64,000 nucleotides of DNA, taken from the sequence record LT598654.1; one strand, 5' to 3'. The first letter of the stretch is position 1; every line of letters begins with the position of its first letter. The position numbers were made by a program, and so were the translations under genes. The notes beneath the pieces are model-generated. The model ran no database searches, was not told the DNA's origin, and saw nothing but the letters and a program-made list of their open reading frames with translations. Shown piece by piece: positions 12,894 to 64,000 of the stretch.

Positions 12894-13223
12894 CTACACA
12901 AGTTGGAATGTACCTGAATGAAGCACCTGCTTTTTAAACGTACCATATAAAGCACGTTGCCTGTAATCTTGCAGAGCACTAATGTCTTGGGTAGTAAACA
13001 GTTCCGTATGGTCTATAACAAAACGATACGCAGCATTATTAAACGCAGCCTGTTTACTGGGAGCCGTTGTACGGTAGAAACCTCTTTTATTTTTAAATTT
13101 AACTCTAACCGAGTAAATCTTTCCATCTACTGTCTCAGAAGAATTCTCCTTCGGAGCGGTGAACCCCGAGGAGAAGTTAGTTTCTTTCCAGACAGAGGCA
13201 TGAATTGGGATATTAAGCAACAT
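12894..13223 (-). CDS. Hypothetical protein (109 aa)
   Basis: Packed between structural genes; SD GAGG upstream. Confidence 0.7.
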   Translation of the reverse strand: MLLNIPIHASVWKETNFSSGFTAPKENSSETVDGKIYSVRVKFKNKRGFYRTTAPSKQAAFNNAAYRFVIDHTELFTTQDISALQDYRQRALYGTFKKQVLHSGTFQLV

Positions 13224-13243
13224 ATCAGCCCCTCAACCAAAGC

Positions 13244-14284
13244 TTATGCTCTGGCTACATCCATTCCGATTCCAGAAATCTGGAAGTAAATACGCATACC
13301 TTTGTTGTCAGCATGGTTAGCATTCAACGCGCGGTATTCACGAGGTTGCGCTTCACCGTATACTGTTACTTCGTGAGTAGCGAACTGAGAAGTAACGTCG
13401 GCAGACGCATACGCAATCATATCCAACTCATGTGGATAAGAATAACGTTGAGTGTTCAGGCTTCTAGGGAAATTGATAATGAACTTACCGTCTTCATAAA
13501 TAGAAGTTTGTTGAACACTATTAATGATACGCGCACTGTCACCTGTGTCTTTGGTAGCACTAACAGGTAAAGTAGGTGTATTAATATCAGACTCACGAAC
13601 CACAAACTTGAGGATACCGTTAGCATCAACAGTATTCAAGTCAGTGCCGCCACCACCTTTCTGCGAGAACACACAGAATAGAGGACTCTTACCGTCCTGG
13701 ATAACTGCACCTGTGTCGTCAACCATGCGCTGAATAACAAACCAAGCAAACTTATCGCCGTCTTTGTCGTATGCCTCAGCCCACATTGAAAATGCGATAC
13801 CGTGATCACTGATAGACAGGAAGTACGACATAGGTACAGCTTCTTCATCAGCAGTATCAAAACCCCAGTTCTCATAAGAGAAGAAGTGAGTATTGGCATC
13901 ACCAGAGGCAGCGTACAGGCTATCAACGTTTAGGAAACCGCATTTATAAATGTTAGAACCCGATGTACGTGACGTAGCAACAGTAACCGCACCCTGGTCA
14001 TCGATAATCAACTGAGTCGGCGTAAACGCATAGAAGTCCAGTGTCTTATCAGTTTGGTTTGCAACCATGTGCAAGTACCAGGGTTGATCTTCATCACCAG
14101 CCAACGGGTCAACAGCCGTTTGCGCCTTAAACGTCGCAGCAGTATGCTGAGTACCTACAGCTAAATCAGCTTGTTGGTTATCAAGTGACACAATTTCAAA
14201 ACCATTCGCCAACAGGTTAGATGCGAGGTCCGCAAGTAACATTTCAATGTTGGTGAAGTTATTCTTTTCTACAGTAAAACCCAT
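13244..14284 (-). CDS. Putative virion structural protein, paralog family A (copy 5 in transcription order)
   Basis: Shares MGFxVEKN, SY.L.ISDHG, GKSPLFCVFS, VRESDINTPT, LNTQRYxYPHELD and GMR motifs with four neighbours. Confidence 0.75.
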   Translation of the reverse strand: MGFTVEKNNFTNIEMLLADLASNLLANGFEIVSLDNQQADLAVGTQHTAATFKAQTAVDPLAGDEDQPWYLHMVANQTDKTLDFYAFTPTQLIIDDQGAVTVATSRTSGSNIYKCGFLNVDSLYAASGDANTHFFSYENWGFDTADEEAVPMSYFLSISDHGIAFSMWAEAYDKDGDKFAWFVIQRMVDDTGAVIQDGKSPLFCVFSQKGGGGTDLNTVDANGILKFVVRESDINTPTLPVSATKDTGDSARIINSVQQTSIYEDGKFIINFPRSLNTQRYSYPHELDMIAYASADVTSQFATHEVTVYGEAQPREYRALNANHADNKGMRIYFQISGIGMDVARA

Positions 14285-24038: not shown

Positions 24039-25679
24039 TTAGGCCTCCGTTGCTCTCGAACCTGTTGGGTTAATATTAAACACAACATGGATTCGTTTAG
24101 CTGCGATAACCGGGTCAAACACCATATCAAGAACAAGGTCACCGTTAGCGATTGTGTCGTTGGTATTGTTTCTATCGTCACACACGTTTTGGTATTCGTA
24201 AACACCGCGTCCGCGCCGGATAGGTTCAAGGATACTGTCAGCAGTTGCCTTAACACGATCACGTAAAACAGAATCGTTTGGATTAAACACGCTAGACAGA
24301 GTGCTTGCCTTAGCACGTTTAAGTACGTAGTTAACCAATCGTACAACGTTAACATACTGGAAGCTGGTTGCGGTAGTCTGGGTAGTTTGTTGACCCCAGA
24401 TAACATAACTACCATCACGCATTTTGCGGATAGGGTTAATCTGCGCCATGTCCAAGCTATCACGAGCACCTTGATCGTATTGAACACGTACACCAAGAAC
24501 GTCCAGCGTACCTAAATCGATACCAGCAGGAGCAAACCAAAGGGCGCGAGTAGAGTCAGCTTTAGCAAAAGCGGCTGCAACGTAACCACTGGGTGGTACA
24601 TAGACTTCAAGGTCATTTTCATAATCGTACACCTTAATGTCGGCGCTGTACAAGGCAGAGTAGTAACTACTGAGGTTCAGAATGTTACGCTTGTAGTTAA
24701 CTGCATCAGCTACTTCCTGCATATCACTTGGCATATCAAGGATTGCAATAGCATCACCGCGACCTTCCGCAATAGAGTTCAATGCGTGGTGTATAGTGTA
24801 ATGAGTATAACCACCGTTAACCAGAATATCCACTTCGATTTCTTCTGGGTCTGAATACAGATCCCAGGCATCGATGATTTGATTTTCCGTAGGAGGTAAG
24901 CCGTCATCACCGCCGTCCAAAATACAGCTAGCAGTATTAACGATTGGAATCTCAGGACAGAACTCGTTGTTACGAACACGTACAATGTTTGATTTTTTAT
25001 TGATAACGTCTTCGATGAAAAGCTGTGTACCTTCTTCGTCTGTCTCTTGGTGTCTGGTAACCAAGAAGCTTTCGTCAGGTTGAACCTGAGCACCAGCTTT
25101 AGACAGGTAAACATCTACGTAGAACTTGAGAGGGTCATGACCGTTACCACGTAAAGCAACACCAGGAGGATTAGACGGACGGATTTCGATAACGATACCG
25201 TTGTTCCAGTCACCAGGGTTAGCAGCACAGAAGTAACCGAGAATGTTTCCAACACCAGGAGTTGTAGGAGTAAAGCCCAGTGAATTCAGTGGGTCGTTAG
25301 CACCTTCTGGATTGTTGGTAGTAGGGTTCTTCCAAACACTCAAAGCAAGTTGAGGGTCTTGTGCATTGGTATCATCCGTAGTGAAGTAAGAACCCGCAGT
25401 AAGGGCTCCGTTAACCACACGGGTTACGTAACAACGGCTTGATTGATTTAAGAAAGGTTCGACAGAGTAAGCCATATAACCATATTCAGTTCCACCGAAC
25501 CCGAACGTGGCTTTATAGTTAGCAAAATCTGTGATAAGGGTCCGTTCACCAACAGGCCCTTTAGGTGTAGCACCGACGAATGCAGCAACAGAGGTCGCTA
25601 CGTTAGCAGGACGCTCACTGAGGTCTTTTACGTAACCGTAGACGCCTGGTGCTGGATTGGATGGATTTATAGTTGACAT
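24039..25679 (-). CDS. Contractile tail sheath protein
   Basis: APGVY, SVAAFVG.TPKGP, PPSGYVAA, WFAPAG, QINPI, IWGQ.T, VNVVRL, FNPND and D.RNNT are canonical sheath motifs. Confidence 0.95.
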   Translation of the reverse strand: MSTINPSNPAPGVYGYVKDLSERPANVATSVAAFVGATPKGPVGERTLITDFANYKATFGFGGTEYGYMAYSVEPFLNQSSRCYVTRVVNGALTAGSYFTTDDTNAQDPQLALSVWKNPTTNNPEGANDPLNSLGFTPTTPGVGNILGYFCAANPGDWNNGIVIEIRPSNPPGVALRGNGHDPLKFYVDVYLSKAGAQVQPDESFLVTRHQETDEEGTQLFIEDVINKKSNIVRVRNNEFCPEIPIVNTASCILDGGDDGLPPTENQIIDAWDLYSDPEEIEVDILVNGGYTHYTIHHALNSIAEGRGDAIAILDMPSDMQEVADAVNYKRNILNLSSYYSALYSADIKVYDYENDLEVYVPPSGYVAAAFAKADSTRALWFAPAGIDLGTLDVLGVRVQYDQGARDSLDMAQINPIRKMRDGSYVIWGQQTTQTTATSFQYVNVVRLVNYVLKRAKASTLSSVFNPNDSVLRDRVKATADSILEPIRRGRGVYEYQNVCDDRNNTNDTIANGDLVLDMVFDPVIAAKRIHVVFNINPTGSRATEA

Positions 25680-25772
25680 TAATAAACTCCCTAAAAGGAA
25701 TATGGCATTAAGTATAAGAACGTAAATATGCTCTTATAATAAAATTATAAACTTTAAGGGAGTTATCAATCT
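25680..25772 (-). promoter_or_regulatory. Structured 5' leader of the sheath gene that sequesters its Shine-Dalgarno sequence
   Basis: Minus-strand RNA: AACUCCCUUAAAG (25764-25752) pairs with CUUUUAGGGAGUU (25697-25685) at 12 of 13 positions. Inner stem UAUAAGAGC/GUUCUUAUA (25738-25713) has 9 bp. Confidence 0.7.
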
Positions 25773-26564
25773 TTATGGGAAGAGGAGGCTCTGGACTGAG
25801 GCTATCTGAATTAGCTCTTTTTCTGCTTTTTCTGGGTAAGCAACACACTTGGATTTTAAAGCTTCTATACTAAAGTCTAAAAGCTCGTTAGTTAATTGAA
25901 CCTTGAAGTTGGCTAAAATAGATTTAATGGCATCGGTAACACGTTTGTCTACCAGCACACTATCAACGAAGTGCAAGGCTACAGACTTCCTAACACAACT
26001 CAAACATTCACCGCACTCTCCAAGAGTATCAGCATCAACATGATAACAACTACGGCTATACTTACCTACAGACTCTAGCAATGATACAAATGCGTCCATT
26101 CCAAATCGGTCACAGTAACCTAACAGGTAACCTGCTTTGGTGGATGAAACGTAAGGTCGCTGTATATTAAACTTAGATGCACCATGTTTGGTCTGAGAAG
26201 AATCCTCACCAAACAAGTCAAGTACCGCAGTCGCTTTATTAAAGAAATCGTCGGTACTGTCCTGAGCAATATCTGCCTGTGTACTTCCAATGTAAATGCT
26301 GTCACCATAGGTAGCAGCAGCCAACAACAAGAACATGTTACGGAAAGGTAGAATCTTATTGGTTAGTTCAAACTGTGCTAAGTTTAGGTCAACGACTTCC
26401 ACGTAAGGTTGGATAAAAGGATCGCTAGATATTAGATTTAACTCTGTGCGATTCTCGTGCGTACCAATGTCAAAAGCTAGAAGCTTAATATCAGTCTGCG
26501 AGTTTAACAAGGTACGTGCAAGCACAAAGCTATCCAGTCCGCCTGAGTAAAGCATTGTTTTCAT
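25773..26564 (-). CDS. queC: 7-cyano-7-deazaguanine synthase (QueC)
   Basis: PP-loop SGGLDS, PFRNMFLL, D...DF, and Zn site SCY...CGECLSC. Confidence 0.88.
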   Translation of the reverse strand: MKTMLYSGGLDSFVLARTLLNSQTDIKLLAFDIGTHENRTELNLISSDPFIQPYVEVVDLNLAQFELTNKILPFRNMFLLLAAATYGDSIYIGSTQADIAQDSTDDFFNKATAVLDLFGEDSSQTKHGASKFNIQRPYVSSTKAGYLLGYCDRFGMDAFVSLLESVGKYSRSCYHVDADTLGECGECLSCVRKSVALHFVDSVLVDKRVTDAIKSILANFKVQLTNELLDFSIEALKSKCVAYPEKAEKELIQIASVQSLLFP

Positions 26565-27367: not shown

Positions 27368-27393
27368 ACAAGACTAGGGGCAAACGCCCCTAG
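27368..27393 (-). terminator. Probable intrinsic terminator or stable hairpin
   Basis: CTAGGGGC-GTTT-GCCCCTAG (8-bp stem, 27374-27393) followed by an imperfect U-rich TCTTGT. Confidence 0.6.
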
Positions 27394-27396
27394 AAT

Positions 27397-27612
27397 TTAA
27401 CAAGTTTCTTTTACAAGCTGACCGATTTCGCAATCGAGTAACTTTTGAATGTCTGCGGGAACTGTATTTCGGGCAGACAGGTGTTTTCTTAACCAATGAA
27501 GGTTAGCACCATGTTTGTCCACGTACCGTCTGTTCTTAGGTAGATCGATAGATTCACCTTGTAAGAACGCATTCAATTTTTCGAGTTTCGTCGCTGCTAC
27601 TGCTGTAGTCAT
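27397..27612 (-). CDS. Hypothetical protein (71 aa)
   Basis: SD AAGGAA upstream; hairpin directly after the stop. Confidence 0.7.
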   Translation of the reverse strand: MTTAVAATKLEKLNAFLQGESIDLPKNRRYVDKHGANLHWLRKHLSARNTVPADIQKLLDCEIGQLVKETC

Positions 27613-29891: not shown

Positions 29892-29922
29892 AGAAACCTT
29901 TGTTTTATTTTATGATTACTAT

Positions 29923-30168
29923 TTACAGTTTAGGGTCTAGCAAGGATTTGTACAGAGACATACCCTTATCCGTAAGTTCCATAGAACCTGAGTTCTCGTA
30001 AACAACAACGAGGTCAAGCTTAACAAAACTCTTAACAGTAGCCTTAGCCACAGACCTGTACACACGATCAGACTTTGCAGTTCCAGCACAACATATATCA
30101 CCTAGAAACTTCAAAGCAGATACCTGTTTACGAGTTAACTTAAATCCGTCTACTTCAATTCCTGTCAT
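29923..30168 (-). CDS. Small hypothetical protein, possible winged helix (81 aa)
   Basis: LTRKQVSAL...TVKSFVKLDLVVV...MELTDKGMSLY resembles MarR-like wHTH patterns. Confidence 0.6.
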   Translation of the reverse strand: MTGIEVDGFKLTRKQVSALKFLGDICCAGTAKSDRVYRSVAKATVKSFVKLDLVVVYENSGSMELTDKGMSLYKSLLDPKL

Positions 30169-54159: not shown

Positions 54160-54807
54160 TTACTTCTTGGCGGTACGAGAACGACCGCGAGGCTTCGCTG
54201 GAGCTTTACCTCGAGGCTTAGCTGGTGCCTTGCCACGAGGCTTAGCTGGAGCTTTAGCTGGTGCCTTGCTACCTGCTGACTTACGTGGGTTAGGGTTAAC
54301 CGGCTTCTTAGCTGCGTGTTTTTCACGAGCGGTCTTCTGACGTTCAGCTAACTTGGTACGAGCTTCTTTCTGCTTGGTACGCATAGTCTTACCGCGTTCA
54401 CGCCATTTTTCCATCTTCGCTTTGTAAGCAGCACGAGCTTTCTGAGCAGCAGTTGGCTTCTTAGCAGCACCACCAGTAGAACCGGCTTTACCTTTACGAC
54501 GCTCAGCAAGAACCTTTGCACGTTCTGCTTTCTTTTTCTTCTCCGCCGGAGTCATTTTCTTTTCGCGTTCCTTACGCGCCTTTTCAGCAGCTCGTTTTTC
54601 AGCAGCAGTTTGGCGTTTCTTAGGACCGGTAGACTTACGAGTGCGGCGAGTTGGCGCTGTAGTAGAACCAAACTGAGAACCTACACCCTTACGACCGCGT
54701 GGCTTAGAAGGAGTTTTGCTTCCAGCTGGCTTGCTGCGTGGCTTAGAAGCAGGTTTGCTGCGAGGCTTAGAAGGACCTTTCGCAGGAGTTTTACGAGTAG
54801 TAGCCAT
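54160..54807 (-). CDS. Histone H1/HMGA-like basic DNA-binding protein (215 aa)
   Basis: Almost entirely K/R/A/P/S/T/G; repeats KPRSKPAS and KPRGKAPA; KPRGRK and KPRGRS AT-hook-like cores; TPAK and TPSK motifs; SD GGAG. Confidence 0.85.
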   Translation of the reverse strand: MATTRKTPAKGPSKPRSKPASKPRSKPAGSKTPSKPRGRKGVGSQFGSTTAPTRRTRKSTGPKKRQTAAEKRAAEKARKEREKKMTPAEKKKKAERAKVLAERRKGKAGSTGGAAKKPTAAQKARAAYKAKMEKWRERGKTMRTKQKEARTKLAERQKTAREKHAAKKPVNPNPRKSAGSKAPAKAPAKPRGKAPAKPRGKAPAKPRGRSRTAKK

Positions 54808-54841
54808 ATTTTATTTCTCCGATATGGATATTAAAAAACAA

Positions 54842-54909
54842 ATATTAGTGTTACCACAAATGTCAGCACTTGAGGCATATCTGCGTCAACTGACTAACAT
54901 TACTAATAT
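54842..54909 (-). promoter_or_regulatory. Long bulged stem-loop upstream of the histone-like gene
   Basis: 24 Watson-Crick pairs in five helices (8+4+5+4+3) closing a 4-nt loop; ends 35 nt before the ATG. Confidence 0.55.
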
Positions 54910-55020
54910 AGAAAGTTTTCGACGCGCCAAGAACAAACTGTTTTTCATTCTTGCTGTTATAAAATTATTTTTCTTCGGAGAAAAGTAAAAAATTTAGGAA
55001 ATTTTTGGTGAAAAAATCCA

Positions 55021-63207: not shown

Positions 63208-63780
63208 TTAATCTCCGTTTGGTAAAAGAGTCATATCGATCTGTTTATTGGTTATGTTGCTGTCCCGTATCGATACGAGTTTAACAATGTGGCGTATAAC
63301 AATATTGATTTCAGAAAGAAGGCTAGTGCATGTTTTGTGCACACGGTCACTGTTAATAGAACTTAAGGTATATTGAGGAGAATCAGGTTGGTCACTGACC
63401 AAGCACAACGTTGTGTTTTCCAAATCTAAAAGAAAGGCAACACTCTGTTTGTATATACTGTGGAGAGAGTCTTTATCAATTCCGTTGGAATCAAAGTTGC
63501 TGATACCGACACCTAAAGAAAGAAGTATTCTATGAATACCTAGACCTCTTTGGTAATTAGGAGAGACCATCTTTTCTTTGTTTAGGTCAGTTACTACTTG
63601 TCTGAATTGACTGAGTGCATTACTAAAGGCATCTTCCACTTCGTATACGGATTTTCCTTCGGTGTTTAAATCAATATCAATTTCAATGGGTGATAGTTCG
63701 AAAAATTCGACCTCTTCCAAAACATCATCAAGGCGTTTCTCGATTTCCATCAACTGGGATGTGAGTGTTTTGAATTCCAT
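63208..63780 (-). CDS. Hypothetical helical protein (190 aa)
   Basis: SD AGGAAA; packed ORF. Confidence 0.7.
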   Translation of the reverse strand: MEFKTLTSQLMEIEKRLDDVLEEVEFFELSPIEIDIDLNTEGKSVYEVEDAFSNALSQFRQVVTDLNKEKMVSPNYQRGLGIHRILLSLGVGISNFDSNGIDKDSLHSIYKQSVAFLLDLENTTLCLVSDQPDSPQYTLSSINSDRVHKTCTSLLSEINIVIRHIVKLVSIRDSNITNKQIDMTLLPNGD

Positions 63781-63794
63781 GGGTTTCCTGTAAT

Positions 63795-63834
63795 GTGTAG
63801 ATGCCTACCAACTATAAATTATAGACACCTACAC
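63795..63834 (-). promoter_or_regulatory. Intergenic RNA stem-loop
   Basis: GUGUAGGUGUCUAU / GUAGGCAUCUACAC form a 14-bp stem with three G-U pairs that work only on the minus strand; no U-tract. Confidence 0.55.
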
Positions 63835-63843
63835 CTTAGCGTA

Positions 63844-64000
63844 TTATTCTACGTCAGACCATTTGTAGTTAGGGAAGTCTGCAAAAGTCAAACCACCTGT
63901 AATCGACGACAGAACAGATTCTAAGTCAGGCGCTGGATGGTCCGCAGGTTTAACCAGTTTACCATCTTCACGGAAGTAATGACCCGGCTTGAACTTGTTC
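63844..64000 (-). CDS. 3' end of a MazG-like nucleotide pyrophosphohydrolase (partial)
   Basis: Frame NKFKPGHYFREDGKLVKPADHPAPDLESVL...WSDVE* resembles the SK...REDGK.LKP....PDL..IL C-terminus of phage MazG/PRA-PH-like proteins. Not in the ORF track. Confidence 0.6.
   Translation of the reverse strand, partial: NKFKPGHYFREDGKLVKPADHPAPDLESVLSSITGGLTFADFPNYKWSDVE

Follow-up and report, generated by a model that had tools for sequence, protein, structure and literature searches.

In bacteriophage T4, the genes e (lysozyme), soc, 49 and I-TevI carry hairpins that sequester the ribosome-binding site (RBS) on early and middle read-through mRNA, as does mobE of phage Aeh1, and these hairpins are bypassed by transcription from a late promoter (PMC3014915). 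The initial annotation of the DNA analysed here, a window of 64,000 nucleotides, invoked this precedent for the leader of a tail sheath gene, and for genes e, soc, 49 and I-TevI the published record is as it had been described (PMC3014915). The window is 100% identical to positions 186001-250000 of phage NCTB (LT598654.1), a circular jumbo phage of 257,877 bp assembled from surface water, which has been grouped with jumbo phages of Erwinia and Dickeya as well as with PaBG and Lu11 of Pseudomonas; the phages of this group possess two sheath genes and a sigma-70-like factor that is highly divergent (PMC7412058). Four further studies (2019-2025; runs X2-X11), of marine and aquaculture metagenomes, also contain phages with about 97% identity to NCTB, on contigs of 48-78 kb or more.

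The sheath gene begins with an ATG at 25679-25677 on the minus strand, and its Shine-Dalgarno sequence (SD), AGGGAG at 25692-25687, lies 7 nt 5' of the start codon. As proposed in the initial annotation, this SD is engaged in a long-range helix, in which AACTCCCTTAAAG (25764-25752) faces 25697-25685 with 12 of 13 positions paired and U25756/U25693 as the sole mismatch, and the enclosed loop holds both the 9-bp inner stem and the TATAAT at 25749-25744 at the places that had been given for them. Because the stop codon of the QueC-like gene directly upstream is 25775-25773, the hairpin occupies the entire 93-nt gap between the two genes (Table 1), and transcripts of the QueC-like gene must enter the sheath leader. 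In a terminator scan, no terminator-like site separated the sheath gene from the QueC-like gene, again in agreement with the earlier reading. The promoter-like AAACTGTAAAT stands at the head of the upstream cluster, which continues into the sheath gene, and two genes without a promoter-like motif of their own come after the one weak terminator-like hairpin within this cluster.

Table 1. Features at and around the sheath leader of phage NCTB, with one further leader of the same design (window positions).
Feature	Coordinates	Strand	Details
Tail sheath gene 1 (regulated cistron)	24039-25679	-	546 aa; Pfam PF04984 (Phage_sheath_1) and PF17482 (Phage_sheath_1C); PHROG 23, E 7e-80
3' arm, outer helix	25680-25697	-	Contains SD AGGGAG and the spacer to ATG
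Inner hairpin	25713-25738	-	9-bp stem, 25738-25730 with 25721-25713
Promoter-like block, internal loop	25736-25749	-	Core TAATTT 25747-25742, then TATTAT; TATAAT 25749-25744 overlaps
5' arm, outer helix	25752-25770	-	Anti-SD core AACUCCCUUAAAG 25764-25752; helix reaches outward to about 25770
QueC-like gene directly upstream of sheath 1	25773-26564	-	Partial Pfam QueC match, E 4e-13
Weak terminator-like hairpin	27374-27393	-	Poor U tract; sole one between the 29930 promoter-like site and the sheath gene
AACTGTAAAT, copy of second promoter-like class (AAACTGTAAA[CT])	29921-29930	-	Heads the DNA-polymerase-like/folE/QueC-like cluster
Second leader of the same design, gene 54160-54807 (AT-hook histone-like)	54814-54984	-	MFE -44.5, z -2.9

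When positions 25677-25772 were folded with RNAfold, the two-tier hairpin was both the minimum free energy (MFE) structure and the centroid, at -25.8 kcal/mol against -10.6 +/- 2.9 kcal/mol for 200 dinucleotide shuffles of the leader (z -5.27; 0/200 as stable), and the same fold was obtained with 131 nt of context (z -4.2). The folding check named in the initial annotation thus returns the hairpin that it had described. The start region of the sheath gene is sixth in pairing probability (0.79) and third in long-range pairing among the 325 genes called in NCTB. Burial of the SD and/or start codon in a stable helix on the long transcript, the feature typical of the T4 cases, is therefore found in the NCTB leader by MFE, by centroid and by the covariation given below, and the inner hairpin probably compacts the spacer, letting the outer helix close. 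No Rfam covariance model matched 25500-25950 at E <= 1. That the structure terminates or attenuates transcription of the operon upstream, as the UUUAUUAAU following the helix in NCTB might suggest, is very improbable, since the terminator scan makes no call, the enclosed loop measures 54 nt, the leaders of L002 and L004 are devoid of a U-rich tail, the start codon lies 7 nt past the helix, and relatives needing a terminator carry a separate canonical one upstream. An intrinsic terminator was hence rejected on the grounds of the missing call, the 54-nt loop and the unconserved tail.

Relatives for comparison were obtained through protein-guided searches, namely single-protein scans and exact-protein look-ups after a word search; a DNA-level search of the phage collection returned only NCTB itself, and a profile-based locus search in viral contigs gave mostly unrelated sheaths. 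The set comprises eight marine relatives with 63-77% sheath identity (L002, L004 and L036-L041), five at 50-54% (L042, L043, L124, L125 and L126), and, from the phage collection, the cultured phages PaBG (46%), Lu11 and HRDY3 (41%) and Erwinia phage Y3 (36.5%). All nine leaders of the NCTB clade have one architecture, in which the outer anti-SD:SD helix encloses an internal loop and, within it, the inner hairpin. The inner stem is present in every relative, with unrelated loop sequences and a partly different stem sequence, and the anti-SD partner positions in the eight relatives are always located just 5' of a TAATTT element. Since the spacer between arm and motif varies by 1-2 nt, plain MAFFT/RNAalifold did not register the 5' arm, and our pair table therefore rests on per-sequence folds, with the comparison anchored on the invariant GGGAG. 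The pair 2 nt past GGGAG is U-A in NCTB, L004, L036 and L040 and A-U in L002, L037, L038 and L039, which requires at least three independent double changes on the sheath-protein tree, while the pair 3 nt past GGGAG is A-U, C-G or U-G among the relatives and the position of the U-U mismatch of NCTB is A-U or G-U in other sequences. Indels are matched in both arms, with L037 expanded (17 pairs) and L004 contracted. Nearly all anti-SD substitutions are C to U changes that retain G-U pairs, as would suit an RNA in the sheath sense but not one of the opposite strand. A covariance-model alignment, although in imperfect register, had 82.4% paired cells compared to 77.5 +/- 1.4 in shuffles (0/500) and outscored every slid control; its pair counts are of lower quality, as the model realigned the sequences without gaps.

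On this comparative evidence the leader structure is under selection, and the SD-occluding long-range hairpin of the initial annotation, which had named covariation in related phages as a check, is real and has been kept through compensatory swaps and matched indels across nine sequences. Weak hairpins are frequent in AT-rich intergenic DNA, and a few other NCTB genes are similar in their start-region pairing score, both of which would be expected if the leader contained a functionless inverted repeat that arose by chance in an AT-rich spacer. We regard this as scarcely credible, as it is already contradicted by the comparative data: the z-score of -5.3 is accompanied by compensatory changes and matched indels in nine sequences and by cognate-specific complementarity in independent lineages. 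A different function has also been considered, namely that the main role of the two-tier helix is in RNase III-type processing, which would free the sheath message from the upstream message, with the cut inactivating or activating the start site as in the T7 intercistronic sites or the lambda N leader. The long outer helix (13-21 pairs), the internal loop and the stacked inner stem provide a compatible geometry, and the helix is situated exactly at the cistron boundary. However, no sequence feature demands cleavage, and helix length and shape vary by lineage, the constant being the start region as the paired partner; we thus consider such a processing role improbable.

The block that follows the 5' arm is the best-conserved part of the leader, with an invariant TAATTT core that is usually followed by TATAGT, and the conserved word of the leaders reads TAATTTTAT(A/T)(G/T)T. 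TAATTT is found exactly once, 33-102 nt before the ATG, in 18 of 18 sheath leaders. Beyond the sheath locus, TAATTTA and TAATTTT are the top enriched heptamers of gene-upstream gaps in NCTB and in the 232-kb relative G001, and of the 116 TAATTT copies in NCTB, 34 precede a co-oriented start by 20-110 nt (6.7 expected, p 1e-15), compared to 13 for the reverse complement counted in the same way. For the longer word TAATTTWWWAG, 10 of 11 NCTB copies occupy such positions. In PaBG, with a GC content of 56%, 15 of 25 TAATTT copies are situated in front of gene starts (2.1 expected, p 8e-11), and nine of these are 30-39 nt from an ATG. The enrichment is strand-specific in NCTB, G001 and PaBG, most copies stand 30-45 nt before starts without a hairpin, and the extended word is retained at orthologous NCTB/G001 sites. 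No conserved -35 box was found in the leaders, and a consensus scan for sigma-70-type promoters (TATAAT with a TTGACA-like -35 at 16-18 nt) calls nothing in the gap.

The initial annotation had placed a late promoter inside the loop, between about 25750 and 25700, and had pointed to TATAAT. The location is borne out by the conserved promoter-like element at 25747-25742, but the element is TAATTT(WWWAG) and not TATAAT. The canonical TATAAT was rejected as a functional element, given that it occurs only in NCTB and L002 among nine close relatives and is not significantly enriched upstream of NCTB genes (10/101). The TAATTT element heads sheath 1, sheath 2, a sheath-like 551-aa protein and an ATPase/virion-protein/major-head operon in NCTB, and the sheath-2/tube, baseplate/tail-assembly, sheath-1/fibre, tail-structural and lysis operons in PaBG, where one further site heads a DNA-metabolism operon. 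Several products of the PaBG operons headed by TAATTT are members of the virion proteome (PMC7412058). From this gene content a late timing of the element may be presumed, with many of its NCTB targets being genes without known function. Transcription at the sheath locus would start at about 25735 +/- 3, some 7 nt past the TAATTT core. The exact start is uncertain, because an RNA begun about 7 nt past TAATTT would be missing some bases of the inner stem; either transcription begins a little further upstream, or the stem functions in the long RNA only, by shortening its loop.

One run filed as RNA contains the phage at a flat, DNA-like depth, and its contigs break at 25737/25769. This break was rejected as a transcript start or RNA end, since it follows the same pattern as two other single-nucleotide polymorphism (SNP) bubbles in the stretch, in which the earlier contig ends at p-31 and the following one starts at p+1, and it is therefore ascribed to a polymorphism at 25768. 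This within-sample polymorphism is located in the outer extension of the leader helix.

As to the factor that could read the TAATTT element, tblastn identified an NCTB homologue of the sigma-70-like gp118 of PaBG (38% identity, E 1e-71) at genome positions 12921-13937; the Pfam profiles of sigma-70 regions 2 and 4 gave no match in NCTB and missed this gp118 homologue. The second promoter-like class, of which one copy precedes the cluster that runs into the sheath gene, is likewise associated with gene starts, with 14 of 34 CTGTAAA[CT] sites lying 20-110 nt upstream of a start (p 2e-9). The form AAAACTGTAAA[CT] is present at 29921-29930 and at about 19 further NCTB sites, has 25 copies in G001 and is enriched in PaBG too; it sits 20-60 nt before starts, strictly co-oriented with the genes, and the genes behind it belong mostly to DNA metabolism (exonuclease, polymerase-like, QueD-like), together with a baseplate hub gene. 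In addition, at least eight early-promoter-like long cassettes are present at 16.8-60 kb of the NCTB genome (for example at 27574, 39417, 46418 and 58920), composed of AACTTTTTTATC, 2 nt, GGTACAAAA, about 30 nt and TTTGCTATAAT, with AACTTTATTAAG..GGTACAAAAC...TTTGCTATAAT as the conserved G001 form.

The consequence of the two possible leaders for the start site was estimated by computing the cost of opening positions -14 to +5, taking as the short leader an RNA whose 5' end lies 9-13 nt past the first base of the motif. In NCTB this cost is 15.8 kcal/mol on the long leader and 6.2 kcal/mol on the short one, so that the start site is predicted to be open on an RNA begun past the loop element, as the initial annotation had anticipated. 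Opening costs 12-18 kcal/mol on the long and 4-7 kcal/mol on the short RNA in 14 of 18 leaders, while little or no occlusion is seen in three or four of the 18 (Y3, L126, HRDY3 and, weakly, L043). With the opening of the start site computed at about 16 versus about 6 kcal/mol, a T4-like reading is well supported in silico, and we consider a self-insulating sheath-1 cassette to be the best explanation of the locus and, judging from sequence and folding models, a fairly probable one. Under this model, in RNA that enters from upstream, in NCTB presumably by read-through from the QueC-like/folE DNA-modification cluster, which no terminator separates from the leader, the segment 5' of the promoter would pair with the sheath SD and spacer, the inner hairpin would shorten the loop, and the sheath cistron would be translationally silent. 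A putative phage-specific promoter, which has a TAATTT core followed by WWWAG/TATAGT and no conserved -35, would then be used, presumably late, and would probably be recognized by the host RNA polymerase together with the divergent sigma factor that the phage itself encodes; it would start transcription between the arms, about 7 nt past the core near 25735, and thereby yield an RNA that is free of the anti-SD arm and would be translated. Promoter choice is favoured as the switch by an inner hairpin that varies and a DNA-like motif, located between the arms, that is invariant. The initial annotation had extended this switch to the whole tail operon, but the hairpin directly occludes the sheath cistron only; what holds for the operon is that it would be transcribed from the internal promoter.

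In more distant relatives, including PaBG and Lu11, another start region pairs with another upstream arm: UCCGUCAAC... is paired with ...GUUGACGGAGA in PaBG and CCCCUU with AAGGGG in Lu11, and in L042, L043 and L125 the AUG region itself is paired. In a duplex test, the true 36-nt segment ending at the motif was set against every other window of this length in its locus. The share of background windows pairing at least as well was 0/568 in NCTB, 0.005 in PaBG, 0.03 in Lu11, 0.035 in L043, 0.04 in L125, 0.08 in L042 and 0.16 in L124, and L126, Y3 and HRDY3 gave no signal of arm/start complementarity in this test. Fisher's combined p over eight lineages was 5e-5, or 4e-3 when conservatively taking the worse member of each pair. 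As some lineages have the signal and L126, Y3 and HRDY3 do not, the design is recurrent and not universal. A strong intrinsic terminator lies a few nucleotides before the arm or motif in PaBG, Lu11, HRDY3, Y3, L042, L043 and L126, and the sheath promoter of these seven leaders must therefore sit in a short interval. The retention of the arm in terminator-bearing lineages suggests a second safeguard or an added role.

These lineages bear on a further alternative, in which the hairpin is a throttle on the sheath gene's own transcript, started upstream of the 5' arm, or a switch opened in trans by a protein, a small RNA or temperature, with TAATTT being an RNA-level loop element and not a promoter. 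Such a role would account for the structure being kept even where a terminator already stops read-through, and for the inner stem including bases just past the motif, as if these were transcribed. Yet in PaBG, Lu11, L042 and L043 the U tract of the terminator ends a few nucleotides before the 5' arm, leaving no room for a promoter 5' of it, and throughout the genome TAATTT acts like a promoter core, mostly at starts without a hairpin. We therefore regard the throttle as unlikely. Both it and RNase III processing are less likely than the T4-like model, and both are compatible with that model and can coexist with it.

Among the 37 TAATTT-headed genes of NCTB, the sheath gene has the largest difference between long and short leaders (9.5, with a median of 0.5). 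Occlusion as a general property of TAATTT sites was ruled out, because the mean duplex energy at these sites equals that of the control; only a few genes show it. One is the AT-hook histone-like gene of Table 1, in whose leader UUUUCUCCGA (54984-54975), located 5' of a TAATTT (54967-54962), is paired with the SD UCGGAGAAA (54822-54814); the pairing spans about 150 nt across internal hairpins, and the motif reads TAATTTTATAA. In the G001 orthologue, this pairing is kept by different letters (CCAACA/UGUUGG). In PaBG (KF147891.1, 68592-68650, minus strand), the head of the PaBG_00101 to PaBG_00093 baseplate/tail-assembly operon forms a perfect 11-12-bp helix, in which the segment 5' of and overlapping TAATTT pairs with the AUG and first codons, while the nucleotides immediately 3' of the motif pair with the SD; opening requires 18.8 kcal/mol in the long RNA and 3.8 kcal/mol in the short one. 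Separately, TAATTT(T)ATA lies in the loop of a short hairpin at 63780-63845 (minus strand), upstream of gene 63208-63780, and likewise at NCTB genome positions 126950-127010; the arms are GUGUAGGUG...CAUCUACAC and AACAAGUA...UACUUGUU, and the SD is outside the helix.

Across the genomes compared, the position 5' of the sheath is taken by genes of at least three families unrelated to one another, and the QueC-like gene occupies this position only in NCTB, with no homologue there in the relatives, while the leader remains with the sheath. That the cassette remains attached to its gene as the upstream neighbour changes suggests a general means by which mosaic phages could keep gene timing robust to rearrangement. 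Here we speculate, with somewhat less than even confidence, that PaBG/Lu11/NCTB-type phages, both the cultured Pseudomonas phages and their abundant marine relatives, might share a clade-wide grammar, in which an as yet undescribed -35-less TAATTT WWWAG promoter class, used via their own highly divergent sigma factor, would serve virion and lysis operons and would, at selected genes, be nested in a helix that buries the start, thus forming a portable cassette. Examples would be sheath 1, gene 54160-54807 (AT-hook histone-like) and the head of the PaBG baseplate operon. If this is true, a gene would be silent on foreign read-through RNA irrespective of what lies upstream. The T4-like model of the sheath leader would itself extend the textbook mechanism of T4, in which translation is licensed via promoter choice, to an unrelated and environmentally widespread group of jumbo phages and to a major structural gene. 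In addition, TAATTT... represents a testable candidate for a late-promoter word, which would allow operons and timing classes to be annotated from sequence. PaBG (host PAO1) and Lu11 (host P. putida) have the same design and are culturable, and the model is thus directly testable in them.

Compared to the described systems, the NCTB leader is most similar to the T4 hairpins. The SD and/or AUG lies in a helix whose 5' strand is upstream of a phage promoter-like motif without a -35, transcripts from the internal promoter, putative in NCTB, would not contain this strand, and the gene is downstream of presumed earlier-class genes without an efficient terminator. However, the NCTB/PaBG/Lu11-type jumbo phages are unrelated to T4; the promoter word is TAATTT... 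here and TATAAATA at T4 late promoters, the latter consensus being absent from the sheath leader, and no gp55-type late system was identified here. Unlike in T4, the promoter-like motif of NCTB is located in the internal loop between the arms and is accompanied by an extra inner hairpin, the protected gene encodes a major virion protein, the tail sheath, instead of lysis, decoration or endonuclease functions, and the regulation is predicted in silico. The lambda N leader and the T7 RNase III sites resemble the sheath leader in that a long, imperfect helix, situated where two cistrons meet, contains or adjoins the RBS, but they act via RNase III cleavage, whereas an internal promoter would be the simpler route here and implies no cleavage. 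In translational riboswitches, RNA thermometers and cis anti-SD elements, an upstream complementary strand masks the SD as well, yet, in contrast to riboswitches and thermometers, the sheath leader has no conserved ligand-binding or melting domain and no Rfam match. The mechanism as such is known from T4; what is new here is a well-conserved case in an unrelated clade of jumbo phages, together with a candidate promoter word.
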